Below are positions 8,896 through 64,000 of a stretch of 64,000 nt of DNA, piece by piece. Every line of letters starts with the position of its first letter. The first letter of the stretch is position 1. A program made the position numbers and the translations under genes. The stretch lies in contig CDROCS010000864.1 in the NCBI GenBank assembly GCA_977020255.1, positions 1 to 64,000 of the forward strand, given 5' to 3'. Source of the DNA: Obrimoposthia wandeli. Lineage: Eukaryota. The notes below the pieces were generated by a model. That model had not been told where the DNA came from. It was given only the letters and a program-made list of their open reading frames with translations, and searched no databases.

Positions 8896-8978
8896 GCAAT
8901 TCTCGGTTTACTAAAATAAAGGGACGTTATAATTATACACGTAAACGCCCATAGATAACGAGGGCGTTTACGCAGCAA

Positions 8979-9695
8979 CTACATATCGGCAATCACCACA
9001 TAAGCGGCATGAATTGGACCATGCACACCCACGACTTTGATTAACTCAATATCAGCGGTTGAACTAGGGCCAGAGATAAAGTTAACACAAGACGGTAAAC
9101 GCTCACCTGCTTGGGCTTTATCATGCAACACTTTAGCAGCTTGGGTAATACGCGGTACAATTTGGCTTTGTGGTACCAAGAATACCGATGTTTCAGGTAA
9201 TAGACTGACCGAACGACCATGAGACGCCGCGCTGTGCAATACCATGGTGCCCGACTCTGCTAACGCTTGCTCAGCGAAGACAATACCGACTTTCGCTTGT
9301 TCTGCTTGCTTGATATTAACAGCATGAGCTTGGTCAACATCCCACGTATAGACATCATCAAATTGTAATTTTAAGCTATTAGCTACGTCGAGCTCAGCCA
9401 AGCGATTATCACCCGACACGACAATTTTACCGGCGCGAAAGCCAGTACAAATACTGATTAAAGTTTCATGTAATTCAGCTTTAGTACAGCTCACGCCTAA
9501 CGAGTTTAAATTGGTCTTAGTAAACTCTAAAAGTGCATCAGCAAGTTGTTGTTGGCTAAACCCTGCCATCACATCATGATGCGGGTTATGCGGCAATGGC
9601 GGACGAACAACGCTTTGGGTATTAAGCTCGCGTCCCAGTTTAGCGGCCAATGAACCCAGAAAACTATCGCGATTATGTATCTTAGCTTGCATCAT
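8979..9695 (-). CDS. lutC: Lactate utilisation protein C (LutC/YkgG/LldG)
   Basis: FISGPSSTADIELIKVVGVHGP signature. Confidence 0.93.
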   Translation of the reverse strand: MMQAKIHNRDSFLGSLAAKLGRELNTQSVVRPPLPHNPHHDVMAGFSQQQLADALLEFTKTNLNSLGVSCTKAELHETLISICTGFRAGKIVVSGDNRLAELDVANSLKLQFDDVYTWDVDQAHAVNIKQAEQAKVGIVFAEQALAESGTMVLHSAASHGRSVSLLPETSVFLVPQSQIVPRITQAAKVLHDKAQAGERLPSCVNFISGPSSTADIELIKVVGVHGPIHAAYVVIADM

Positions 9696-11155
9696 TATTT
9701 CTCACTCTTATTAGCTTTAGCTTCAACTATACCTGTCACAGCTGCCGTATCACGGTTAGCAAACCAACTGCGGAATGACTCGCCATCTGGTTGTGGTAGG
9801 TCGCGGGCTTCAGTCCATTCAGCAACAGCGCCAACGTTAATCGGTAACTTGCCATCTTTAATCACTTTCGGCGCCACTTTACCGCCCACCTTCATCGCCA
9901 TGTTCCACAATTTAGGACTTGAATTAAGGTAATTAAATGCCGATACCGTTAGTCGTTCCGCCAATGGTGTGATCTTTTTAATCACCATTTTTTCACGATG
10001 CTTTAATAACAAATCTGATAGTGGGATCTTAACCGGACAGACATCATTACACGCTTGGCATAACGAACAGGCATACGGTAAATCTTGGAAATCATCATAA
10101 CCACCCAACAATGGTGACAATACCGCACCAATCGGTCCTGAGTAGATAGAACCGTAAGACTGACCACCAATATGGCGATAAGCAGGACAAGTATTTACAC
10201 ATGCTGCACAGCGGATACAGCGTAAGATGTCTTTAAATTCTGAGGCTAGAATGTCTGAACGACCGTTATCTAAGATCACTAAATGGAACTCTTCAGCGCC
10301 ATCCATATCGTTAGCTTCTCGCGGGCCAGTAATCGCGGTGACATAACCCGTTAATGGCAAACCAACCGCACTACGACACAACAAGCTGACCATAATATCC
10401 AGCTCTTCAAAGGTCGGAACAATACGCTCCATACCCATCACCGCGATATGTACTTTTGGTAATGAAGTAGCTAATCGCGCGTTACCTTCATTAGTCACTA
10501 AGCTAATTGAACCTGATTCGGCAACCGCAAAGTTACAGCCGGTAATACCAATGTCTGCTTCGATAAAGTCATGACGAATGTGTTCACGGACAAAACGGGT
10601 CATTTCTTCCGGATCAGAACTGCCTTTATAGCCAATCTTGTCTTCGAATACATCGCGGATCTGCTCACGATTTTTGTGCAGCGCTGGTACCACAATGTGT
10701 GAAGGTGGATCGCAATCATCCACTTGTAAAATGTATTCACCTAAATCGGTTTCAATCACTTCGCAGTTGTTACGTTGAATAACGGCGTTCAAGCCAATTT
10801 CTTCAGTCACCATGGATTTTGATTTAACGACTTTTTTAGCGTTTTTTTCTTGGATGATATTTTCAATGTAGTCTGTGGCTTGTTGCGATGTTTCAGCAAA
10901 AAACACATGACCACCGGCTTTTTGCACGTTTTCACTTAACTGATGTAAGTAGTAGTCAAGGTTGTCTAATACATGCTCACGGATCTGCTTACCGTTTTCA
11001 CGCCACTCATCCCAGTTACCGAGTTTGTCGGCCGCTAATTGACGATTAGTGAACATACGCTCTTGGGCATTGGCCACCGATTTACGCATAAAGCTATCTT
11101 GCATTTGATCTTTAATACGCTGCTTAAATATCACATCACTGGTTTTCATCGACAT
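9695..11155 (-). CDS. lutB: Lactate utilisation protein B (LutB/YkgF/LldF), Fe-S
   Basis: [41 protein letters not shown]; likely start MSMKT at 11155. Confidence 0.95.
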
Positions 11156-52051: not shown

Positions 52052-54562
52052 TTAAAACAGCCCCATTTGTTGATCGGTTATCAAATCAAAGCTCAAGCCA
52101 ATAAATGGCAAGATACCATCAGCAATGGGTTTAATTTGTTTTTCAATATAGTGCTCAAAATCCAATACTGAATGTTGATGCTCGACCGCTTCAGGGCCGC
52201 TCAGCGTAAGCACATAACTGATCCACGCTTTGTGTTGATAACGTAACGGCTGGCCTAATTGACGGTTTTTCTCATCCGCTGCGCGCGCTGCTTTTACATG
52301 GGGCGGCACGTTCTTCACATATAATGCTAATTCTTGGCGCAAACGCTTACGGTAAACCAGCTTATCATTAAATTCTCCCGCTAAGGTTTTCTCCACTATT
52401 TCCAGCACATAATCTTCTACCGCGATGTTATGGAAGACTCTATGGTATAACTCCTTCTGGAACATCTTCGCCAGATCAGTCCAATCGGTACGCACCGTTT
52501 CTAGCCCTTTAAAGATCAGCTTTTCACCGTCTTTAGTATGTACTAAACCGGCATAACGCTTCTTACTGCCTTTATCCAAACCACGGATCGTGGGCATTAA
52601 AAACTTGTGATAATGCACTTCGTATTCAATATCGAGGAAACAATCAATGTCGTAATCTTCACGCAGGTGACGCTGCCATTGCTCGTTGATGTATGCCGAC
52701 AGTTCCGCGCCCATACGATCGGCTTGTAAGCCGCGATCAGCTGACGTTCCAGTGTAACCAGCGGTAAATTTAGATTCATCAAGTAATACAAAGGTGGAAT
52801 CGGTATCTCCGTAGATCACCTTGTACCCTTTGGCTTCGAGCCAGCCAGCGGTAGTCTGCATGATCTCTTGACCGCGCATGGTAATTGACGACGCTAAACG
52901 GGTATCATAAAAACGACAACCGCCAGATCCTAACACCCCATAAAACGAGTTCATTAAGATCTTAATCGCTTGCGAACGCGCGGCATCTTTGTCGAGTTTA
53001 GCTTGATCGCGCTGCGACCAAAGTTCGGTAATAATATCAGGTAGATAATGCTTGTCCCGATCAAACAAGCCACCACGGAACCCAGGGATCGCCTCTGTCG
53101 GATTCTGCACACCTTCTAACAATCCCACCGGATCAATTTTAAAGGTGCGAATAATCGACGGATACAGACTTTTAAAATCCAGTACGATAACGTGATCGTA
53201 CAAACCAGGGAATGAGTCCATCACATAACCACCGGGACTGGCCATTACCCCACTCTCACGTAGGTTTGGCGCGATATAACCTGCGCGGTGTAACTTAGGC
53301 AGATAAACATTGGTAAACGCCAGTACCGAGCCACCGTTACGATCTAATTCCAATCCGGTTAACTGCGAGCGTAATAACAAGAAATCCAACAACCGCGTTT
53401 TAACAAAGATATCCCACACTAATACGCAATCTTGCAGATTGTACTTCGCTAGTTTGAGCTTATTAAAATGAAAATCGTGGTTGATCTGTTCCATGCGGTT
53501 ATCGACATCGTCAGTCTCTTTACCGACACCGAGGATCGCTTGCGCGACATTTTCGAGACTGAAACTGGGGAAGCTATAGGTCGCTGTTTTTAGACTATCG
53601 ATGCCATCAATCACCACCCGACCATGCAAAGTCAAAAAACCTTGCTGTTGCGGGGTGCGGCCATCACGCCAATGCAAGTTTTGACCACCACGACCCAATG
53701 CTAGCTTAATATTATGAAAGGTAGCGCGTACAGCCAATAGACGGAAATCAAAATTAATCACGTTCCAACCAATAAAGACGTCGGGATCGTAACTGATCAC
53801 AAAGGCTTGCAGTGCTTGTAATAGACTTTTCTCGTCAGCCACCCAATGGATTAACGGCTCACTTTCGGGCGCTTGCAATACGTTTTTATCAGTTTTTTCT
53901 TGTGCCTGTGCTCGATCTTTATCAGCGAGTGCTTGTGCTAAGTCTTTATCAAGCTGCTCGCCAATCATGTATACCCGTTTAAAGGGTTTACCGTCGGGGC
54001 AATAGGCAGGGCTTAATGAATACAAACCGATAGAGTACAGTTCACCGTGTTCTGAGCATTCGATATCCAGTGAGATCTGTTTAATTTTATCCACTAAGTT
54101 GTCTGGCAGCTCTGCAGGTTTAAGCTGGGCTTGTTGAAACTCCACATACCCTTTACGTTGCACTGGCGTTCCGGTGAACTCGACAGCCCCTTTTACAAAA
54201 CGCTCCATTAAGTAACGTTCAGCTGGGCGAATGTCGGCTTCTAATACCGTCACTAGCTTACGTCTTAATAATTCTTGGGCGCGATGATAGTCATGCGAGG
54301 TCTGGAAATAAAACGCGCTCATCAATTCTAAATCAAAACTGCGCATTTTCAGATCTTTATAATTAAAGCGCGGATTTAATTCACTTAAACAGGCTAATGC
54401 CGTGGTCAGTTGGTCTTGAGGAATGAACATAACCAGCGGCTGGGTTGCCGGGATCAACTTAACCGCACCCATTTCAGATGCTAACCAGTAACTTAATTCA
54501 TTGTTACCATTGCGATCACGGCTATGGCGCGATAATAAAAAACCCAGATATGTAGCAGACAA
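52052..54562 (-). CDS. polB: DNA polymerase II
   Basis: SLDIEC exonuclease motif, DFKSLYPS, KILMNSFYG, YGDTDS, KKRYAG; TTG start. Confidence 0.97.
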   Translation of the reverse strand: MSATYLGFLLSRHSRDRNGNNELSYWLASEMGAVKLIPATQPLVMFIPQDQLTTALACLSELNPRFNYKDLKMRSFDLELMSAFYFQTSHDYHRAQELLRRKLVTVLEADIRPAERYLMERFVKGAVEFTGTPVQRKGYVEFQQAQLKPAELPDNLVDKIKQISLDIECSEHGELYSIGLYSLSPAYCPDGKPFKRVYMIGEQLDKDLAQALADKDRAQAQEKTDKNVLQAPESEPLIHWVADEKSLLQALQAFVISYDPDVFIGWNVINFDFRLLAVRATFHNIKLALGRGGQNLHWRDGRTPQQQGFLTLHGRVVIDGIDSLKTATYSFPSFSLENVAQAILGVGKETDDVDNRMEQINHDFHFNKLKLAKYNLQDCVLVWDIFVKTRLLDFLLLRSQLTGLELDRNGGSVLAFTNVYLPKLHRAGYIAPNLRESGVMASPGGYVMDSFPGLYDHVIVLDFKSLYPSIIRTFKIDPVGLLEGVQNPTEAIPGFRGGLFDRDKHYLPDIITELWSQRDQAKLDKDAARSQAIKILMNSFYGVLGSGGCRFYDTRLASSITMRGQEIMQTTAGWLEAKGYKVIYGDTDSTFVLLDESKFTAGYTGTSADRGLQADRMGAELSAYINEQWQRHLREDYDIDCFLDIEYEVHYHKFLMPTIRGLDKGSKKRYAGLVHTKDGEKLIFKGLETVRTDWTDLAKMFQKELYHRVFHNIAVEDYVLEIVEKTLAGEFNDKLVYRKRLRQELALYVKNVPPHVKAARAADEKNRQLGQPLRYQHKAWISYVLTLSGPEAVEHQHSVLDFEHYIEKQIKPIADGILPFIGLSFDLITDQQMGLF

Positions 54563-54588
54563 AATTAACCAGAAAAAGTAGTTTAAGA

Positions 54589-54604
54589 CTGGTTAAGTGT
54601 ACAG
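54589..54604. promoter_or_regulatory. LexA (SOS) box of polB
   Basis: CTGGTTAAGTGTACAG = CTG-N10-CAG, 27 bp upstream of the start; polB is an established SOS gene. Confidence 0.85.
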
Positions 54605-54702
54605 CATTTTTAGAAATGTGAAAATGGCTGTTACGAACTAGCAATACTATCCGTATTAAGCACTAATATTATATAACGACAAGATCATACTATCAGCACT
54701 AA

Positions 54703-54777
54703 TAAAACCCCTGATATGTAGCAGACGAAATGGTTCAGTAATAAATGGTTATAAATTGATTAAATGCACAGCGTTTT
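54703..54777 (-). repeat. Diverged duplicate of the polB 5' end and SOS box
   Basis: AAACCCCTGATATGTAGCAGAC versus AAACCCAGATATGTAGCAGAC (54540); TTG-N10-CAG at 54756-54771. Confidence 0.8.
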
Positions 54778-54938
54778 ATGCTACTAAAAATCTTAGTTTA
54801 CTAAAATTTTCAATCTGTTATATTTTCTTTCGTTCCAGTTACTCATATTTGAGTCCCGTTTGGTTAGCTAGCCGGATTGTTTGAGATAAAAACGAGCTGT
54901 TTAACCTATATTAGGATGGGCTGTTTCCCGAATCGATT

Positions 54939-54965
54939 GAACCTTTTTTTTCAAGCAAGGTCTGA
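54939..54965 (+). promoter_or_regulatory. sigmaE (RpoE)-type promoter upstream of the ter cluster
   Basis: GAACCT-N16-TCTGA versus the known GAACTT-N16-TCTGA pattern. Confidence 0.6.
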
Positions 54966-55149
54966 TCTATTGATGTAGCCATTGAAACACCGCTGGTCGT
55001 GAAGGTTGTAAAGCGACGCCTATACCAAGTGTGCCAGTTGTCTTGGGATCTAAAAATATGCGTCTGTTATCAAATTAATCAATGTAATAGTGATATTATT
55101 CGCACCACTATTACAATTTCACCTACAACATATTATTTAGGAAAAATTT

Positions 55150-55758
55150 ATGTCTATATCGCTAGAAAAAGGTCAACGAATTAGTTTAGAAAAAAATGGT
55201 CAGCAGCTTAATAAAGTATGTGTTGGTGTTAACTGGGGTGCAATTGAAAAGAAAGGCCTATTTGGTGGTATTAAGAAAATAGCCGTTGATTTAGATGCGA
55301 GTGTGTCTCTGTATTCAGCAAGTAAAGATTTGCAAGACCTGATCTATTTTGGACAATTAAAAAGTAAAGACGGTTCTATTGTTCACAGTGGTGATGATAC
55401 TACTGGTGATCTTGATGGCGATGATGGTTTAGATAACGAAGTTATCACCGTAAATCTAGCCCAAGTACCTGCAAACGTAAACTTTGTGGCTATCATTTTA
55501 AACAGCTATAAAGGCCAAGACTTTGCAACAATCCCATTCGCAAGTGTTCGCTTATACGAAGGTACGCCAACACGTGTTGATCAAGTAGTTGCAAGTTATA
55601 ACATCGCGAATGATGCTAAATTTAGTGGCGCAGTATCAATGGTTTTAGGTTCTTTTTATCGCCACAACGGCGCATGGAAGTTCAAAGCGATTGGTGAACC
55701 AACACAAGATAAAAAACTAGAGCAACTAGTAAAAACAGTGGCAAGTAGTTACCTATAA
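55150..55758 (+). CDS. TerD-family protein (TerZ-like)
   Basis: SLEKGQRISL, VDLDAS, HSGDDTTG, WKFKAIG. Confidence 0.92.
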   Translation: MSISLEKGQRISLEKNGQQLNKVCVGVNWGAIEKKGLFGGIKKIAVDLDASVSLYSASKDLQDLIYFGQLKSKDGSIVHSGDDTTGDLDGDDGLDNEVITVNLAQVPANVNFVAIILNSYKGQDFATIPFASVRLYEGTPTRVDQVVASYNIANDAKFSGAVSMVLGSFYRHNGAWKFKAIGEPTQDKKLEQLVKTVASSYL

Positions 55759-55797
55759 TTTAAATACTAATTAATAAATATAGTAGAGGTTAATCCA

Positions 55798-56250
55798 ATG
55801 AGTTTTTCAAATTTTTTATCTGGTCTGAAAGAAAAAACAAATGAATTAAAAGATGAAGTTTTGAAATTTAAAAATAAAAACTTCTTACATGCTGCAACCG
55901 CAGGTTCTGCACTTATTGCAATGGCTGATGGTTCAATTGACTCAGCTGAAAAGCAAAAAATGCTGAAATTAATTGAAAACAATGATGCTTTAAAAGTATT
56001 TAAAACATCTGATGTGATCAGTTCTTTCACTGAGTTTTTAAACAACTTTGATTTTGACAAAGATGTTGGTGAATCTAAAGCGTGTGAAGCATTAAACCGA
56101 ATCAAAGATAACAATGTCGAAGCAAGAACTGTGATGCGCTTAATTTTAGCCATTGCCGCTTCAGATGGTGTTTTTGACCAAGACGAAAAAATTGTAGCAA
56201 TCAAAATTGCTAAAGAATTAGGTTTAAATCCAGCAGATTTTGAACTTTAA
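55798..56250 (+). CDS. terB: TerB-family protein
   Basis: ALIAMADGSID..EK, IAASDG.FDQDEK, IAKELGL. Confidence 0.92.
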   Translation: MSFSNFLSGLKEKTNELKDEVLKFKNKNFLHAATAGSALIAMADGSIDSAEKQKMLKLIENNDALKVFKTSDVISSFTEFLNNFDFDKDVGESKACEALNRIKDNNVEARTVMRLILAIAASDGVFDQDEKIVAIKIAKELGLNPADFEL

Positions 56251-56345
56251 TTGTCATAATAAGCTAGAGCAATTACGATCTATCTATGATGTGTAATGCT
56301 TACCCGTTTAAATTAAATATTATCTTATATTATTAAGGAAGAAAT

Positions 56346-56924
56346 ATGTCAGTATCATTACAAAAAGGCGGCAACGTTTCGCTAGAGAAAGCAGCACCAG
56401 GAATGAGCAAATGCATTTTAGGACTTGGCTGGGATACCCGCGCTACAGATGGCGTTGATTTTGATTTAGACGCATCGGTATTTTTAATTAATGCTGAAGG
56501 TAAAATCCGTCAAGACACAGATTTTATCTTTTATAATAACCTTAAATCAGTTTGTGGCTCAGTTGAGCATACCGGTGATAACCAAACTGGTGAAGGCGAC
56601 GGCGATGATGAAGCAATTAAAGTAAATTTATCATTAGTGCCAGCAGATGTAGTTAAAATTGTTATTGGTGTTACGATCCATGATGCTGAAGCAAGAGGCC
56701 AAAACTTCGGTCAAGTTTCAAATGCATTCATGCGTGTTGTAAACGAAGAAAATAATAATGAAGTGATCCGTTATGACCTTTCTGAAGATTACTCTACTGA
56801 AACAGCGTTATTGTTTGGTGAGCTATACAAGCATAACGGTGCTTGGAAATTTAAAGCGATCGGACAAGGTTTTGCTGGCGGTTTAGCACCAATGGCACGA
56901 CAGTACGGCGTTAACTTAGGTTAA
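56346..56924 (+). CDS. terD: TerD-family protein
   Basis: [44 protein letters not shown]. Confidence 0.95.
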
Positions 56925-56954
56925 TTCTTAAAAATTGATTTAATCAGTAATTAT

Positions 56955-56989
56955 AAAATCCGATAATCGAATATGATATCGGATTTTTT
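56955..56989 (+). terminator. Internal terminator-like hairpin after terD
   Basis: AAAATCCGATA...TATCGGATTTTTT. Confidence 0.7.
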
Positions 56990-57057
56990 ATATTTAAAAT
57001 TAAAAATCTAAAATTAAACATCATGCTGTTTTACTTCAGCGTTGAAGGTAATGACTT

Positions 57058-57816
57058 ATGACGACTAAATCACAACGAATTATTGTATTAACAGATCTTG
57101 ATGATAGCTTATTTCAAACATTAAAAAAAATCCCTGAAGGCGTATCATCAACGCCTGTAGCGACTGATAGAGATAATAACCCTTTATCATACATGACCAA
57201 TCCACAACGCATTTTTTTTGATATGCTGGTCAATTCAGGTGCCGAAATAATTCCAATTACCGGTCGTAACACCGATGCATTAGAAAGAGTCAGTTTGCCT
57301 TTTGGTGAATACAGCTCAGTATCCCATGGTGCCATCGTACTGGATAAAAATAACCAGGTTTGTAGCCAATGGTTACAGTGGCTAAATATTGATACAGCCA
57401 CATTTGCTAACTTACTTGATGATATTAATGATCGTGTGCAAACCATTATTCATACCCAGTCATTAAATGCCCGCAGTCGCGTGATTGTCGATCAGAATAT
57501 TCCCGCATACGTGTCGATAAAAGGCATGGATTCTGACCTTGATGAAATTTACAATGCATTACCTGAATACAATCAACATGACACATTAAGATTTCACCGT
57601 AACGGCCGTAACATGGCCTATATTCCCGCGATATTTTGTAAGAAAAATGCGGCTGAATTTATTTTAAAACAGTTAAACGTACAACCTGATGATCTGGTTT
57701 TAACTGTCGGTGATAGTATTAGTGATTTACCTATGATGCAGACAGGCACCTATGCTATTGCACCGTTAAGAAGCCAGCTTGCAACTGACATATTTAAAAC
57801 TAAATTAAGTGAATAA
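57058..57816 (+). CDS. HAD-family phosphatase of Ter-associated type
   Basis: TDLDDSLFQT, ITGR, CKK.A, GDSISD. Confidence 0.85.
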   Translation: MTTKSQRIIVLTDLDDSLFQTLKKIPEGVSSTPVATDRDNNPLSYMTNPQRIFFDMLVNSGAEIIPITGRNTDALERVSLPFGEYSSVSHGAIVLDKNNQVCSQWLQWLNIDTATFANLLDDINDRVQTIIHTQSLNARSRVIVDQNIPAYVSIKGMDSDLDEIYNALPEYNQHDTLRFHRNGRNMAYIPAIFCKKNAAEFILKQLNVQPDDLVLTVGDSISDLPMMQTGTYAIAPLRSQLATDIFKTKLSE

Positions 57817-57819
57817 ACA

Positions 57820-58902
57820 ATGAATTACAACTTCGACACCCAAGCAGGGCTCATTTCTCTAAAAGTATTAAACACGAAAAAACCGGTGGACGATTTATTA
57901 ACATTCGCCTGTCGTCAAAACCCTAAGCGTAGTTTTATGCTGGTGAGTAAAGTGCTTGGCCGATATACACCGACAAAACCGAACGTGATGAGAGAGGTTT
58001 ATAACTACTTATCACAGGCGATTGAGGGTGATAAATTAACTTACGTGGTGAGCTTGGCTGAAGCGGCGACGGGATTAGGGGCTGGTGTTGCAGATAGCTT
58101 AGCCAGAAAACAACAATCTAAGGTTTATTTTCAACATACAACACGCCATAAATTAGATGTACCACTGTGGTTTACAGTCGATGAAGCACACAGCCACGCC
58201 GTTAATCATATGTTTTATGCACCGAAAGCTGAATTGCTTGACGGTATTCGTCAATCGAATCGCTTAGTGGTTATTGATGATGAAATAACAACGGGCCGCA
58301 CTATTAAGTTGTTGATTACCAGTCTATTAAAGAAATTAGACAATATTGATGAAATTCAAATCCTGTCTTTAGTGAATCTGTTAGATGAAGACCTAAGGTT
58401 AAAAGAAGACGATTTTGGCATTAAAATTAATTACTTTTCATTAATGGATGCGCAAATTTCTATCGATCAAAAAGACGATTTCAAGCCTGAATTACCGAAA
58501 AATGTAGATGCTGGATTATGTGAATCACATTCATCAGCCGATTTAGGCCGATGCGGTATGTTAATGCCATACACGGGTGACTTACCAACAATCACATCAT
58601 CAAATAAAATGACCATAGTGGCGAATGGTGAACATCAATATATTCCGTTTTTAGTTGCCGAGCAGCATGAAGATCAGGGTTGTCATGTATTGTATCAATC
58701 GATTAACCGCTCACCGTTATTAGTTGGCGAATCAATTGAAAACAAATTAGCCTTCTCATTTAATGGCAGTGAACTTGAGCACTACATCTATAATTTCTAT
58801 CCAGAAAATAGAGATGTATATGTATTATTAGAAAGTGAAAGTGGCAGAGATAAGCATCATTTTGCAAGAGAGTATCCATTACACAGCGTTGCAGTTGCCT
58901 AG
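57820..58902 (+). CDS. Ter-associated phosphoribosyltransferase (PRTase_2 + TRSP-like)
   Basis: RQNPKRSFMLVSKVLGR, AEAATGLG, HTTR, VIDDEITTG. Confidence 0.88.
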   Translation: MNYNFDTQAGLISLKVLNTKKPVDDLLTFACRQNPKRSFMLVSKVLGRYTPTKPNVMREVYNYLSQAIEGDKLTYVVSLAEAATGLGAGVADSLARKQQSKVYFQHTTRHKLDVPLWFTVDEAHSHAVNHMFYAPKAELLDGIRQSNRLVVIDDEITTGRTIKLLITSLLKKLDNIDEIQILSLVNLLDEDLRLKEDDFGIKINYFSLMDAQISIDQKDDFKPELPKNVDAGLCESHSSADLGRCGMLMPYTGDLPTITSSNKMTIVANGEHQYIPFLVAEQHEDQGCHVLYQSINRSPLLVGESIENKLAFSFNGSELEHYIYNFYPENRDVYVLLESESGRDKHHFAREYPLHSVAVA

Positions 58903-58916
58903 GTGACACTGGCGCT

Positions 58917-58948
58917 AGATGTAGATGTAAATGTAAATGTAAATGTAA
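58917..58948. repeat. Hexamer microsatellite (A[A/G]ATGT)x5
   Basis: AGATGT AGATGT AAATGT AAATGT AAATGT between PRTase and StiP-like genes. Confidence 0.85.
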
Positions 58949-59003
58949 GAATACGACTTTCCGACATCCAACTAAATGATAAAAATCACGGACTACGATT
59001 AAA

Positions 59004-60104
59004 ATGATAAACACAGATAAAAGCCCTTTATTAGGCAGCTATAGTGCCGACGATTGTTTATTTTTATTAACAAAAGTTGAACCCGAGTTTTATACCATTG
59101 AAGATAAAGAACGCCTCATTCAAACAGGTGTTATGCATTATTCAGAAATGGTTAATCAAGAGTCCGCGCCATCACCTGAATATGCGGAACTATTTGTCAG
59201 TCTGACAGCCCAATACAAACAACGCCTTGCAGATGAAGTTTTACAATTAACTAAAATGATTATAGATAATCGTTTGAATGATGTTTGCATCGTATCTTTG
59301 GTGCGCGCTGGTACGCCTATCGGTGTGTTATTGAATCGAGCACTGAAAACATACAGCAATGTAAATACGTCACACTACTCTGTTAGTATCATACGCGATA
59401 AAGGCATAGACGAGAATGCCCTCGACTACCTCATCGAGCATGAAAAAATCAAGCCGGAGAGCATTGTTTTTGTTGATGGCTGGACGGCTAAAGGCGTTAT
59501 TACCCAAGAACTTAAAGCGGCTATTGGTGAATATAATAGCAGTCGTAATGTTAATATCCCTGACCAATTATTTGTTATTTCAGATATAGGCGGAACAGCA
59601 GACTATTCCGCAACGTTTGATGACTATGTGATCCCTAGTGCATTGATGAATTCGACGGTGAGCGGGTTAGTAAGTCGTTCTATTCTTAATCATCATATTG
59701 GCGAGGATGATTTTCACGGCTGTATCTCTTATTCACATTTAGAAAGTCATGATCATTCAAATTGGTTTGTCGATCAGGTTTCAGCCTGCTTTAGCGAAAA
59801 CAGCTTTAACATGCCATTGCCTCAAGCCGCTATTCCAGCTGCATTGCGACAAAAAAATACCCATGATTTTTTACAAAAAATAATGCAGAAATTTAACGTG
59901 TCTAATTATAACCGTATCAAACCGGGTATAGCTGAAGCGACGCGCGTTATGTTAAGAAGAGTGCCTGATTTATTGATTGTTCAAAGCAAAATAGATCCAA
60001 GTACTGTTCACTTACTCAAGCTAGCGAGTGAAAAATCAATTGAGATAATCGAAATGCCTGAGATGCCATTTGGTGCTTGTGCTTTGATTAAAGACGTAAA
60101 ATAA
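59004..60104 (+). CDS. StiP-like/PRTase_1 protein with C-terminal PELOTA-like domain
   Basis: GSYS.DDC.FLL, HYSEM, SLVRAGTPIG, FVDGWTAKG, SGLVSRS, KPGIAEATR. Confidence 0.88.
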   Translation: MINTDKSPLLGSYSADDCLFLLTKVEPEFYTIEDKERLIQTGVMHYSEMVNQESAPSPEYAELFVSLTAQYKQRLADEVLQLTKMIIDNRLNDVCIVSLVRAGTPIGVLLNRALKTYSNVNTSHYSVSIIRDKGIDENALDYLIEHEKIKPESIVFVDGWTAKGVITQELKAAIGEYNSSRNVNIPDQLFVISDIGGTADYSATFDDYVIPSALMNSTVSGLVSRSILNHHIGEDDFHGCISYSHLESHDHSNWFVDQVSACFSENSFNMPLPQAAIPAALRQKNTHDFLQKIMQKFNVSNYNRIKPGIAEATRVMLRRVPDLLIVQSKIDPSTVHLLKLASEKSIEIIEMPEMPFGACALIKDVK

Positions 60105-60129
60105 TATTTTTTAGAGTAAGCGGGATAAA

Positions 60130-60738
60130 ATGAAAATAGCATTATTTGATTTTGATGAAACGTTAGTAGAAGAAAACTCACTCGGTTTTTTGTTTAAGCA
60201 TTTTTTAGGGAAAACCCCATTACCGCTTCAGTTATTACCTTTATTGCTAAAACCGTCTACCTATAAACAACCGGTTAAAACATCCATTAAGACGCACTTT
60301 TATAAGCAATCGTTGAATGGTAAAACATCCGCAGAGGTTTTTGCCGCGGGTGAATCGCTGTTTCAAAAAGTGACGCCGATTGATGAAGTCGTGAATATGA
60401 TGACAGCGTTACATGATAGCGGCATTCAAGTGTGGATTGTCACAGCGTCACCAGAACAATATATCGCCGGTATCGTCAAGCAATTGGGGTGGCCAGTTGA
60501 ACGTGTTATCGGCACCACTATCTTGGAACAAAATGGCCATTTCACCGGTGATATTGACAGCGAATGCCAAGAACAAGAAAAAGTACGCCGTTTAGATGCC
60601 ATTTTTAATGACAGCAGTATTACCTTTCAGGTTGAACAAGCCTTTGGGAACTTACCTGTTGATATCCCGATGTTAAAAATGGCTAAAAAAAGATTTTATG
60701 TATTAGACAGCGTCGTTAAGCCCTATGAAAAATCTTAA
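60130..60738 (+). CDS. HAD-IB family hydrolase
   Basis: FDFDETL, VTAS, EK, GN...D.PML. Confidence 0.85.
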   Translation: MKIALFDFDETLVEENSLGFLFKHFLGKTPLPLQLLPLLLKPSTYKQPVKTSIKTHFYKQSLNGKTSAEVFAAGESLFQKVTPIDEVVNMMTALHDSGIQVWIVTASPEQYIAGIVKQLGWPVERVIGTTILEQNGHFTGDIDSECQEQEKVRRLDAIFNDSSITFQVEQAFGNLPVDIPMLKMAKKRFYVLDSVVKPYEKS

Positions 60739-60867
60739 TAAGGTTTGCTCTTTTTAGCGGTTTAACGACACAAAATCTATTTTAGACTATGTGCGTACTA
60801 GCATGTTACTGTAACCGTTAAATCGACAGTTTTTAACACTAATAAAATATAATACTGGAATGTAAAA

Positions 60868-61953
60868 ATGAACTTGATTGATAATGTATGGCCCTTTTTG
60901 TTAATTCTACTCTCATGTTATTTATTAAAATATGCATGTGATACTTTTGAACAAGCTGCTTCTTACCTTGGCCGCAAATTTCCACCAGGCGTTAAAGGGG
61001 CAACAGTAAATGCTATCGGGTCAAGTATGCCTGAAATGTGTGTTGTGATTGCTTGTTTGTTTTGGTTCGACGATCCATCATTAGTGATGGTTGCATTAGG
61101 TGTGACAGCAGGTTCTGCGATATTTAATGGTTGTGTGATCCCAGCACTTTCGATCATCATGGCGAAAGACGAAGACGGTAAAGCCGTTGATTCAATTAAA
61201 CTCACAAAGCGTGTATTAGTACGTGATGTTTTCTGGGTATTATTAGCTGAAATCACCTTGATTTACTTCCTAGGTTTCAACGCATTCACACTTTGGATGG
61301 CCGTTGTTCTGAACGTTATATACTTAGGTTACGCAGTACATTTATATATTGATGCAAAAAGCCATCAAGAAGTTGAAGATGCATATGAATATGAAGAAAT
61401 TGAAGATCGCGGTTCGTTCTTGAATTTAATTACCTTCAACTTTAATACGCTGTTCTTCTCAAACAGACCCTTCACATTAGTATCTGCGCTGGTTGTGTTA
61501 GTGCTAGCGATTGCGGTTATTTCTGGTTCTTCACATTTATTGGTTGAAGGTGTATTAGGCAGCGCGAGCGTAATGGGTGTTCCTCAGTTCTTTGCTGGTC
61601 TAATCTTTGGTTCTGCCGCTTCTTCAGTGCCAGATCTGATGTTATCAGTTAAAGATGCGCAAAAAGGCGAGTATGAAGATGCTGTTGCTAACCCGTTAGC
61701 ATCTAACACTTTCGATACGACTGTTGCATTTGCTTTGCCACTATTAGCTTGGTTCATGATCAACGGTGTCGATCAACTACCTTTAGTGCAAGATGAAAGC
61801 CTAACACTATTACGTTGGTCTATCGTTGGTATTACTGGTGCAGTAGCTGCAAGCTTGTTGTTCAACTATAAGAATGTAACAAAAACAGTTGCTTACTTCT
61901 TGTTGTCAATGTTTGTCGTTTGGGCTGGCGCTATGTATGCCTTTATTGGTTAG
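60868..61953 (+). CDS. Ca2+/cation antiporter (CaCA, Na/Ca exchanger family)
   Basis: alpha-1 GATVNAIGSSMPE, alpha-2 GSAASSVPD...ASNTFD; acidic central loop. Confidence 0.88.
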   Translation: MNLIDNVWPFLLILLSCYLLKYACDTFEQAASYLGRKFPPGVKGATVNAIGSSMPEMCVVIACLFWFDDPSLVMVALGVTAGSAIFNGCVIPALSIIMAKDEDGKAVDSIKLTKRVLVRDVFWVLLAEITLIYFLGFNAFTLWMAVVLNVIYLGYAVHLYIDAKSHQEVEDAYEYEEIEDRGSFLNLITFNFNTLFFSNRPFTLVSALVVLVLAIAVISGSSHLLVEGVLGSASVMGVPQFFAGLIFGSAASSVPDLMLSVKDAQKGEYEDAVANPLASNTFDTTVAFALPLLAWFMINGVDQLPLVQDESLTLLRWSIVGITGAVAASLLFNYKNVTKTVAYFLLSMFVVWAGAMYAFIG

Positions 61954-62000
61954 TTTTAAATAACTAATTAGCCCAATAAATTAGCCTTTTTTAGGTTATA

Positions 62001-62033
62001 AAAAACGCCTGATACACTGTATCGGGCGTTTTT
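62001..62033 (+). terminator. Terminator closing the ter cluster
   Basis: AAAAACGCCTGATAC-ACT-GTATCGGGCGTTTTT. Confidence 0.85.
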
Positions 62034-62177
62034 AATTGCAAAATAAAAACGCCGATGGTGACTGTTTATTTCATACAAGGATGTAATCGGATGTTACCAT
62101 TTATTTAACATATGTTATAAAGTTTAGCTGGAAAATAAATCCACAATTTTAGATTAATAAAAGAAGAGAACACGCTT

Positions 62178-64000
62178 ATGACTTCAACCCTAAAACCTTT
62201 CATATTGCTGCTTGTCAGTGGTTTTTTACTCATGCTTGGTTATGGCTTGAGTAACATTCTGTTGCCTGTTCGCATGCAAAATGACGGTATTAGCGTCGAT
62301 AACATCGGTATCATCTTATCTATGCTGTCAGTCGGGTTCTTACTGGGTGCAATCTATAGCCGCACGCTATTGCAGCGGGTTGGTCATATTCGTATATTTG
62401 CCATGTGCGGCAGTTTAACTTCGGTGGCGATCTTACTTTCAGGTTTATATCCAGAACCACTCATGCTCGCGGCGATGCGCATGCTGACGGGATTTTGTAT
62501 GGCCTGTGCCAATGCCACGCTTGATAGTTGGTTAAGCCACAGCGCGACTGAAGAAAGCCGTGGACGCATATTATCGATTAACCAGATGGTGATCATGTCG
62601 GCGCTTTTCTCTGGGCAGTTTTTATTAAACGTGGCTCCGATCAGCGACGTTACCTTGTTTATTATTGCCGGTATTTTATTTAGCCTTTCTATCACCCCAA
62701 TCGTGATCAGCAAACAACTCGGGCCGCAGATTGAAGACAGCCAGTCGATGTCCTTAATGACCATTATAAAGCTATCACCGCTTGGGGTTATCTGTTGTTT
62801 TTATGGTGGTTTTTTGTATGCAGGTTTAGTTAACATGCTGCCTATTTTTGCCAGCGACAACGGTATTCAAGGTTTCAGTTTATCTATATTCATGGGGGCA
62901 TCTATTTTTGGCGCCATCGTATTCCAATATCCAATAGCTTATTTATCTGACCGTTTTGACCGTCGTAAAACCATGATAGCCATGGTCTTAATCATTGCGG
63001 CTTTGTCTTTACTGGTACCGTTGTTGATTAGTTCATCGCAGTTTAATCTCACCTTGTTAACGATTGCGGTCGTGATGGGACTCACAGCTTGTCTTTACCC
63101 GATGAGCATGTCAGAAACCTTCGATAAAGTATTAAGAGAACAGATCCTAGCGGCAATGGGCTCCTTGCTGCTGATTTATGCTTTGGGCAGTATTCTGGGA
63201 CCCAATCTCGCGTCTATCGCCATGAACATGTTTGGCAGTGCCGCATTATTTTCATTTACGAGCATAACGGCCATTACCTTACTGGCGTTGATTATCGGTA
63301 ATATGCTTAAGCAAACCGCATTACCCCGTGATGAACAAGAAAACTTTATCATGCAAACGCCCTCCGGTGTGGCATCAGAACTGGATCCCCGTACTCAGTA
63401 TGCACAGCCTTCTTTCGAGCAAACCTCAGAAGTTGAAGTAGCGATTAGTTTAGCCGCTAAAAATCCTGCTGCCGCCGTCAACATGGCAAAATCATTGGCC
63501 ATGCGCGACCCCAATAATGCCTCGAACTTAGCGGCTGCATTAAGTACTATTGATGAAATTGATATTGGCCGACTCTATCAAGCAATCACCACGGCCGCGC
63601 CAGGCATGAGCATTCACATTGCCGAAGCGTTAACCAATGCCTCGCCAGAACAAGCCGATGAATTAGTTGACTGGATCACCACCGAGCGCCCCGACCAATT
63701 TACCAGTATTATTGTCGCTATCGCCAATTCAATGCCAGACAACGGGATTAATATGATGGAAATCGCCGCTGAGAATATGGTTGAAGATCATCAAGACGAG
63801 CTACTCGAAATGACAGATCAATACATGACCAGTCTATCTGATTCATTAGATGATATGCGTCCTGTCGATCGTGCAGCTGCAGCAAGTGAGCAAACTGCAA
63901 CTGAGCTGTATAGCCGTTTAACCGATGTATCCCCTACCCAATCCGCCGACTTCGCCTTGGCGGTATCGGAAGCATACCCAGAATCATCTAACGTGGTAGC
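62178..64000 (+). CDS. YcaD-like MFS transporter with long acidic helical-repeat C-terminal extension (3' partial)
   Basis: My translation from ATG 62178: RVGHIRIFA, LSDRFDRR, ELDPR; frame open to window end; absent from the ORF track. Confidence 0.88.
   Translation, partial: MTSTLKPFILLLVSGFLLMLGYGLSNILLPVRMQNDGISVDNIGIILSMLSVGFLLGAIYSRTLLQRVGHIRIFAMCGSLTSVAILLSGLYPEPLMLAAMRMLTGFCMACANATLDSWLSHSATEESRGRILSINQMVIMSALFSGQFLLNVAPISDVTLFIIAGILFSLSITPIVISKQLGPQIEDSQSMSLMTIIKLSPLGVICCFYGGFLYAGLVNMLPIFASDNGIQGFSLSIFMGASIFGAIVFQYPIAYLSDRFDRRKTMIAMVLIIAALSLLVPLLISSSQFNLTLLTIAVVMGLTACLYPMSMSETFDKVLREQILAAMGSLLLIYALGSILGPNLASIAMNMFGSAALFSFTSITAITLLALIIGNMLKQTALPRDEQENFIMQTPSGVASELDPRTQYAQPSFEQTSEVEVAISLAAKNPAAAVNMAKSLAMRDPNNASNLAAALSTIDEIDIGRLYQAITTAAPGMSIHIAEALTNASPEQADELVDWITTERPDQFTSIIVAIANSMPDNGINMMEIAAENMVEDHQDELLEMTDQYMTSLSDSLDDMRPVDRAAAASEQTATELYSRLTDVSPTQSADFALAVSEAYPESSNVV

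Follow-up and report, generated by a model that had tools for sequence, protein, structure and literature searches.

A Ter-type gene block of Moritella with a predicted Ca2+/cation exchanger in the place of TerC

Described Ter systems and the Moritella block

Ter systems have been described as combining signal biosynthesis by phosphoribosyltransferases (PRTases) and HAD enzymes with the ligand binders TerB and TerD, the transmembrane component TerC and the sub-membrane parts TelA and TerF, and Ter genes also occur in jumbo phages (Iyer et al. 2021, PMC7824862). According to a passage of a 2025 paper (PMC11994780), the 2012 analysis by Anantharaman, Iyer and Aravind distinguished biosynthetic modules with two enzymes from others with five, so that a short module is not in itself new. 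TerC-family proteins are metal (Mn2+) transporters, and one of them, MeeF/YceF, is encoded with the TerD-like YceCDE genes (PMC10550928, PMC12096827). Here we describe a block of eight genes from a bacterium of the genus Moritella, carried on a 64,000-nucleotide stretch of DNA (positions 1 to 64,000 of contig CDROCS010000864.1, assembly GCA_977020255.1, deposited as Obrimoposthia wandeli; hereafter "the window"). Comparative data give good support to the view that in this block a predicted, divergent Ca2+/cation exchanger (CaCA) stands where TerC stands elsewhere.

The block shares with the classic Ter systems (terZABCDE, or TerD-TerB-TerC with PRTase and HAD genes; PMC7824862, PMC11994780) its TerD paralogues, TerB, two enzymes of predicted PRTase fold, a HAD phosphatase, an operon-like layout on one strand and an accessory, horizontally moving distribution, and one of its TerD proteins is about as near to Klebsiella TerD as orthologues are. 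It differs in that the Moritella type has neither TerC nor DUF475 in the locus or the genome and carries a CaCA gene in that slot, in an added HAD-IB gene, and in lacking ATP-grasp, C-C lyase, TerA, TelA and the TerY/vWA-kinase-phosphatase module. Judged by the components that define a Ter system, the block contains two TerD genes with the acidic Ca2+-binding loop, TerB (PF05099) and a minimal biosynthetic module of PRTase and HAD proteins, represented by PRTase_2-TRSP, the PF11202 protein, HAD-IIB and HAD-IB; a TerC-family membrane protein and the extended module of ATP-grasp amidoligase and TIM-barrel C-C lyase were not found in it.

The yceCDEFGH genes of Bacillus subtilis offer a second comparison. 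There, too, TerD paralogues (YceC, YceD and YceE) are genetically coupled to a divalent-cation transporter, but the transporter is the TerC-family Mn2+ exporter MeeF/YceF (PMC10550928), whereas the Moritella block has a CaCA-fold exchanger together with enzyme genes. A literature search returned no paper joining TerD with a Ca2+ exchanger or antiporter; an earlier mention in the 2012 analysis is still possible, and the novelty of the CaCA-linked variant is therefore provisional.

The membrane gene in related loci, genomes and phages

Related loci were surveyed in a sample made up of the 80 GTDB loci nearest to Moritella StiP, plus the window's own, in which open reading frames (ORFs) were called and clustered and the clusters named with Pfam. 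PRTase_2, HAD-IIB and StiP form a near-universal core, present in 64, 69 and 77 of the 80 fetched loci, respectively. Other recurrent clusters are C-C_Bond_Lyase, a TerA-like TerD protein of 380 amino acids (aa), DUF475, TerC, ATPgrasp_Ter, AIM24 and a set of vWA, PP2C and kinase genes. The DUF475 cluster also scores on the TerC profile.

The membrane genes were compared in the 41 loci that contain TerD and StiP and have unrelated genes on both sides. Sixteen of these bounded loci carry CaCA only, 14 DUF475 only and 5 TerC only; 6 carry none, and two of the genes were never found together. Profile hidden Markov models built for each cluster gave no sign of an overlooked TerC or DUF475 gene in the loci. 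A naive Fisher test of this exclusivity gives p = 7e-7, a value that ignores the kinship of the loci. On the StiP tree the pattern requires at least five gains or losses of CaCA and 11 changes of membrane-gene state. The alternative genes also share a position beside TerB and TerD, as in the orders CaCA TerB TerD TerD PRT2, TerB TerC TerD TerD PRT2 and TerB DUF475 TerD PRT2 (PRT2, PRTase_2). The proposal in an earlier note on this DNA, made from the sequence alone, that the exchanger takes TerC's place thus agrees with both the exclusivity and the shared slot.

Around this slot the gene order varies. Psychromonas, Colwellia, Pseudoalteromonas and Vibrio (V. jasicida) have the order TerD-TerD-CaCA-PRT2-HAD2B-StiP-HAD1B-TerB (HAD2B, HAD-IIB; HAD1B, HAD-IB), Moritella has this gene set reordered, Zetaproteobacteria end in StiP-CaCA-TerB, and Endozoicomonas and others have CaCA-TerB followed, after further genes, by the lyase. 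The exchanger nevertheless keeps its adjacency across at least five lineages, three gene orders and phages, and CaCA and HAD-IB remain neighbours despite the shuffling, as the earlier note's reading of them as parts of one system demands. HAD-IB occurs in 12 of the 16 CaCA-type bounded loci versus none of the 19 TerC/DUF475-type ones.

In Vibrio jasicida (locus L017, 12184-17486) and Pseudoalteromonas the CaCA-type locus is followed by three TerY-like genes of the vWA kind and by genes for a PP2C phosphatase and a Ser/Thr kinase. This module lies directly downstream of the CaCA-type locus, after TerB, in loci L028, L029 and L031, and Moritella is without it. PADLOC v2 returned no TerY-P match for the V. 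jasicida vWA, PP2C and kinase genes, only weak kinase matches.

Pfam searches found no TerC, ATPgrasp_Ter or C-C_Bond_Lyase inside the block, as the earlier note had reported. The source assembly (1.35 Gb in 6912 contigs) is composite, and other contigs of it carry a number of distinct bacterial TerC genes. Matches to TerC, ATP-grasp and lyase on those contigs were discarded because the contigs need not be Moritella, and the search for the missing genes elsewhere in the genome was therefore made in M. dasanensis and four other CaCA-type reference genomes (two Psychromonas, Pseudoalteromonas and a Mariprofundaceae metagenome-assembled genome, MAG). Across these five genomes there was no match to C-C_Bond_Lyase, no DUF475, and no TerC match over the cut-off, the best reaching 20-23 bits in ORFs of about 215 aa. 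ATPgrasp_Ter matches in four of the genomes were weak and fell in CarB-like ORFs of about 1075 aa, the size of carbamoyl-phosphate synthetase, and the Mariprofundaceae MAG had one 42-bit match in a 367-aa ORF. That last match aside, the five genomes contain no convincing Ter ATP-grasp, and no second locus holding the missing genes was found in them.

By sequence the window's exchanger belongs to the CaCA superfamily, with two repeats, the signature motifs and the acidic ligands, and exchange activity is predicted. Its alpha-repeat signatures GSSMPE and ASSVPD are kept, as are Asn87 and Asp283, and these positions align with the NCX_Mj ion ligands (E54, E213, N81 and D240). With YrbG and NCX_Mj the protein shares the two Na_Ca_ex repeats, the alpha-repeat signatures and the acidic and hydroxyl ion ligands; it differs from them in forming part of a separate long-branched clade, in occurring alongside a canonical exchanger as a second copy and in its linkage to TerD and TerB. 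Against the YrbG equivalog TIGR00367 it scores 99.6 bits, under the cut-off of 179.65. Each of the five CaCA-type genomes encodes a second, canonical YrbG-like CaCA elsewhere, and the Na_Ca_ex scores per repeat are 50-74 bits for the Ter-linked copy versus 97-131 bits for the canonical one. In a tree the Ter-linked and phage exchangers form one clade, about 3.1 changes per site from the housekeeping YrbG-like copies of the same genomes. Identity of the Ter-linked exchangers to the window protein ranges from 100% down to 31%.

Exchangers of this clade were found in 38 phage records of 78-187 kb (37 Vibrio phages and Pseudoalteromonas phage J2-1), where they are 44-57% identical to the window protein and mostly annotated "hypothetical protein". 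Five phage loci were inspected, namely those of Vibrio phages D69 and D497 and of three phage-like contigs to which protein homologues had led. TerD genes, arranged TerD-TerD or TerD-TerD-TerD, lie 5' of the exchanger in four of the five. A gene of about 140 aa immediately precedes the exchanger in four of the five; it encodes TerB in D497 and a TerB-like protein in the others (hhalign probability 86.5%, E 5e-6, with a query profile that included the D497 protein). Phage D497 has TerB-CaCA with no TerD within 4 kb. The inspected modules are often near thymidylate synthase or dihydrofolate reductase genes. The jumbo-phage Ter modules, which have been proposed to serve in superinfection exclusion, likewise include TerD/TerB-type genes, but the partners named in the review are TerC, TerF and TelA (Iyer et al. 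2021), whereas the Vibrio and Pseudoalteromonas phages pair TerD/TerB-like genes with CaCA. Judging by these arrangements, TerD-TerB-CaCA is a module in its own right, and it could work without the enzymes, since phages carry it alone.

Among 401 evenly drawn gammaproteobacterial species genomes, StiP exceeded its cut-off in 12 and the exchanger (E <= 1e-40) was present in 3, including the Moritella genome on which the survey was centred.

Enzyme genes, layout and host of the block

The earlier note also regarded the biosynthetic part as a reduced module yielding a different product. This feature proved not to be distinctive: PRTase_2, HAD-IIB and StiP are the near-universal core of the surveyed loci, the lyase is missing from 12 of the 14 DUF475-type bounded loci, and ATP-grasp is missing from all 41 bounded TerD-linked loci. 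Of the variant that the note envisaged, the replacement of TerC by a Ca2+/cation exchanger is well supported, and the shortened PRTase/phosphatase pathway making a different ribosylated product is not, in the form proposed.

The PRPP (phosphoribosyl pyrophosphate) loop of the PRTase_2 protein, VLVDDEITTGRT, is conserved, and D153, D154, E155, T158, G159 and T161 are invariant in the alignment (pattern DDE..TG.T). StiP appears, by its fold, to be a second PRTase. Its AlphaFold model (predicted local distance difference test, pLDDT, 81) has two domains. In an exhaustive VIA-align search residues ~55-260 matched the PRTase fold, with Z 10.0 to 8a0c, Z 8.5 to 7shg and about 7 to HGPRTs; residues ~285-366 form an L7Ae/YbxF/pelota-like domain (Z ~8), to which L7Ae profiles also match in sequence. 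The predicted fold thus resembles type I PRTases and ribofuranosyltransferases (Z 7-10) and no known protease. If the model is right, the name "cysteine protease StiP" does not describe the fold, the N-terminal domain is a PRTase, and the locus therefore keeps both PRTases. JGI records label StiP homologues uracil phosphoribosyltransferase, and PF11202 earlier bore the name PRTase_1. When the StiP profile was compared with that of PRTase_2 by hhalign, the match covered only 35 columns at 15% probability, and Foldseek with the whole two-domain model returned noise (aminotransferases at a TM score of about 0.2). Cys18, His45, His238, Cys240 and Cys359 are invariant in StiP.

The best structural matches, 7shg and 8a0c, are PRPP-dependent polysaccharide ribofuranosyltransferases that act with a phosphatase (8a0c being a Bcs3-type multienzyme), and the Moritella locus likewise joins a predicted PRTase-fold transferase with a HAD-type phosphatase. 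The likeness is at the level of fold (8-10% identity); in the Moritella locus StiP is fused to the L7Ae/pelota-like domain, and there is no polysaccharide gene context.

The HAD-IIB protein has all of the motifs DLDDS, TGR and GDSISD, and outside Moritella its gene lies directly 5' of StiP. The HAD-IB protein retains motif I, DFDET, but its motif IV reads GNLPVD, with Asn replacing the first Asp. The same substitution (GNLPxD) occurs in 16 of the 17 members of the Ter-linked HAD-IB cluster, the exception being a divergent copy in locus L093. Since the substitution is conserved in the clade, full activity of Ter-linked HAD-IB is uncertain; the protein might bind metal differently or act as a binding protein. 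The core PRTase_2, HAD-IIB and StiP genes also occur without any TerD or TerB gene, in 16 bounded loci.

The canonical TerD aligns end to end with Klebsiella TerD (2KXT/2KXV; E 3e-89) with its Ca2+-binding motif intact, and the first gene, terZ-like in the earlier note, encodes a divergent TerD paralogue that keeps the acidic loop motif GDDTTGDLDGDD. The M. dasanensis genome has exactly two TerD genes, both from the Ter block. TerB is present in 50 of the 80 related loci.

The eight ORFs that the earlier note had named were recovered by ORF calls, Pfam and NCBIfam where it had placed them, all on the + strand and spanning 55150-61953 of the window (Table 1). Its two terminators also exist, as hairpins followed by T-runs, although a simple consensus scanner for promoters and terminators detected neither, and both were found by reading and folding the sequence. 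The region of the internal hairpin (56950-56995) folds at -12.6 kcal/mol (z -2.5) and that of the closing terminator (61995-62040), whose hairpin is followed by UUUUU, at -21.5 kcal/mol (z -7.3). A promoter-like site at 55090-55117 in the leader is weak, shuffled sequence having given more matches than the real one. A scan of 54400-62400 against Rfam matched no family, either in the 587-bp leader or beyond it, with only sub-threshold small-RNA matches over the terminator, and the locus has no regulator gene. A major facilitator superfamily (MFS)-type transporter gene, outside the Ter block, begins 140 bp past the terminator and continues beyond the window (62179-64000); M. marina has an MFS neighbour at the matching place.

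Table 1. Features of the Ter block in the window and of the exchanger loci inspected in phages and at unlinked sites
Feature	Position	Strand	Basis or remark
Non-coding leader, 587 bp, AT-rich	54563..55149	+	ORF-free; upstream of first TerD gene
Divergent TerD-domain paralogue, 202 aa	55150..55758	+	Pfam TerD 143 bits; E 1.4e-24 to Klebsiella TerD 2KXT
TerB, 150 aa, predicted ligand-binding or adaptor protein	55798..56250	+	Pfam PF05099, 66.5 bits
Canonical TerD, 192 aa	56346..56924	+	Pfam TerD 285 bits
Hairpin and run of six U, weak terminator or attenuator	56956..56991	+	Between terD and enzyme genes; sequence reading and fold
HAD-IIB/Cof-like phosphatase, 252 aa	57058..57816	+	Pfam Hydrolase_3 / S6PP; TIGR00099-like
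PRTase_2 + TRSP phosphoribosyltransferase, 360 aa	57820..58902	+	Pfam 178 + 38 bits
StiP (PF11202) + PELOTA_1, 366 aa	59004..60104	+	Pfam 328 + 99 bits (PF11202 cut-off 28.7)
HAD-IB hydrolase, 202 aa	60130..60738	+	TIGR01490, 105.4 bits (cut-off 98.3)
Divergent Ca2+/cation exchanger (CaCA), 361 aa	60868..61953	+	Pfam Na_Ca_ex (PF01699), two repeats
Strong intrinsic terminator closing the block	62000..62036	+	Sequence reading and fold
Inspected phage locus L102	5849-10074
Inspected phage locus L103	7207-10086
Inspected phage locus L104	5478-10134
Inspected phage locus L105	813-5083
Inspected phage locus L106	3443-5023
Unlinked CaCA copy, Neptunomonas antarctica (L101)	9001-10080		No Ter gene nearby; adjoins GGDEF-EAL genes
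Unlinked CaCA copy, Motiliproteus MAG (L113)	8931-9965		No Ter gene nearby

The contig itself is from Moritella, and it is a bacterial passenger or associate in an assembly that is far larger and probably of eukaryotic or mixed origin. Compared with the proteins of Moritella dasanensis, StiP has 99% identity and the exchanger 100%. StiP has 96% identity to that of M. marina, where polB and an MFS gene flank the same eight genes in identical order. Between terD and the HAD gene, the intergenic stretch that contains the hairpin (56915-57065) has one mismatch to M. marina (locus L013, 7945-8095), a near-identity that contrasts with the StiP values; the mismatch falls in the untranslated Shine-Dalgarno region 5' of the HAD start codon, and the hairpin is identical. 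TerD and the Ter-linked CaCA are present in 2 of 13 Moritellaceae genomes, and the G+C content is 0.35-0.38 in the block versus 0.44-0.46 in its flanks. Because of this scattered occurrence and low G+C content, the block appears to be an accessory, horizontally acquired island of Moritella.

Short Logan contigs 90-99% like the window, drawn from two metatranscriptomes of aquatic origin and from a few runs without labels, cover terD, PRTase_2, StiP and the exchanger gene. One of them bridges the junction of StiP and HAD-IB (60067-60205), and the evidence for co-transcription goes no further than that; one metatranscriptome contig stops at 56982, at the internal hairpin, a weak indication. These contigs are compatible with expression in relatives and prove neither transcription nor operon structure.

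Proposed mechanism, alternatives and meaning

We consider it reasonably probable that Moritella acquired the block horizontally and that it represents a Ter variant whose Ca2+ exchanger takes on the divalent-cation role of TerC; since TerC-family proteins are divalent-metal (Mn2+) transporters, a Ca2+/cation exchanger could be their functional analogue. In such a system the PRTases would use PRPP to form a ribosyl-5-phosphate adduct, and the HAD phosphatase or phosphatases would remove the phosphate to leave a small, riboside-like molecule. At the membrane, TerB and TerD would couple this riboside ligand and Ca2+ binding to the exchanger, and the output would be an altered flux of divalent cations (Ca2+) across the inner membrane. 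The change in flux might serve chemical-stress tolerance, phage exclusion or both; this stress or anti-phage role is one that we infer.

Several observations weigh against this reading. The 80 surveyed loci were chosen as the closest to Moritella StiP, not at random, and they are phylogenetically clustered, so that the Fisher value overstates their independence. Which ions the exchanger is specific for does not follow from its sequence, and the RNA signal comes solely from short metatranscriptome contigs of relatives and may be DNA. PADLOC-DB v2 has no system model for the eight proteins: the PRTase_2 protein gave only weak PRTase_III-A matches (E 3e-4) and the other seven none. Ter loci may not need a membrane partner in every case, since 6 of the 41 bounded ones lack any membrane gene. 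Finally, the exchanger also occurs apart from Ter genes. Unlinked CaCA copies occur in Neptunomonas antarctica, at 80% identity, and in a Motiliproteus MAG, at 71%, and both genomes have a Ter locus elsewhere with DUF475/TerC; two further homologues of 33-40% identity in the 401-genome sample are unlinked. The notion that the clade is strictly dedicated to Ter systems was rejected on account of these copies; the clade is strongly, not exclusively, Ter-linked. Both the Neptunomonas and the Motiliproteus copies nest inside the Ter-linked clade, which suggests that they separated from Ter loci secondarily.

The loci without a membrane gene, and the two genomes that combine a TerC/DUF475 Ter locus with an unlinked exchanger, would also fit a different account, in which the exchanger does not replace TerC but is an addition that buffers Ca2+ for TerD, Ter loci work without a dedicated membrane partner, and the jobs of TerC and CaCA differ. 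Characterised TerC proteins, moreover, handle Mn2+ and not Ca2+ (PMC10550928). We hold this account to be unlikely, though worth keeping in mind: the three membrane genes never occur in one locus and occupy the same slot by TerB and TerD, the five CaCA-type genomes lack any TerC-family gene, and phages keep TerD-TerB-CaCA as a compact unit.

A further alternative takes the locus to be concerned chiefly with riboside biosynthesis and export or uptake, with the CaCA-fold protein moving the product or a precursor, not Ca2+, and TerD and TerB as regulators. The occurrence of the enzyme core without TerD or TerB, the marked divergence of the exchanger from canonical ones in its repeat scores and the co-variation of HAD-IB with CaCA are in its favour. 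It seems improbable, however, in view of the conserved Glu/Asp/Ser/Asn set that coordinates ions in NCX_Mj and of the phages that carry TerD-TerB-CaCA without enzymes, and CaCA members are not known to carry organic substrates. That the exchanger and HAD-IB genes form a transcription unit of their own, with no relation to the Ter genes and next to them only by chance, as the 129-nt gap and weak promoter-like site before the CaCA gene and the internal hairpin that splits the block might suggest, is contradicted by the adjacency in at least five lineages, three gene orders and phages, and is very improbable.

Beyond the replacement of TerC by an exchanger, we tentatively raise a broader idea, for which we would claim no great likelihood: TerD-TerB-CaCA may be a self-contained, Ca2+-gated membrane module of bacteria-phage conflict, in which TerC, DUF475 or CaCA forms a conduit for divalent cations that acts as effector by opening or by reversing, with the riboside as the trigger sensed by TerB. 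If that were true, a single ionic mechanism would underlie the tellurite, colicin and phage resistance conferred by Ter genes.

How the Ter cluster protects the cell has been unclear since the 1990s. The interchange of TerC, its relative DUF475 and CaCA beside the Ca2+-binding TerD points to divalent-cation transport as the contribution of the membrane component, and the recurrence of the CaCA swap in several marine lineages, in TerC-free genomes and in Vibrio phages suggests that Ter systems work through divalent-cation flux. The predicted PRTase fold of "cysteine protease StiP" would correct an annotation. TerD, TerB and a transporter make a small set for testing, and since the CaCA family has established assays and solved structures, the role of TerC itself becomes testable. 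The phage TerD-TerB-CaCA modules, in turn, suggest that marine phages and their hosts compete over the handling of Ca2+.

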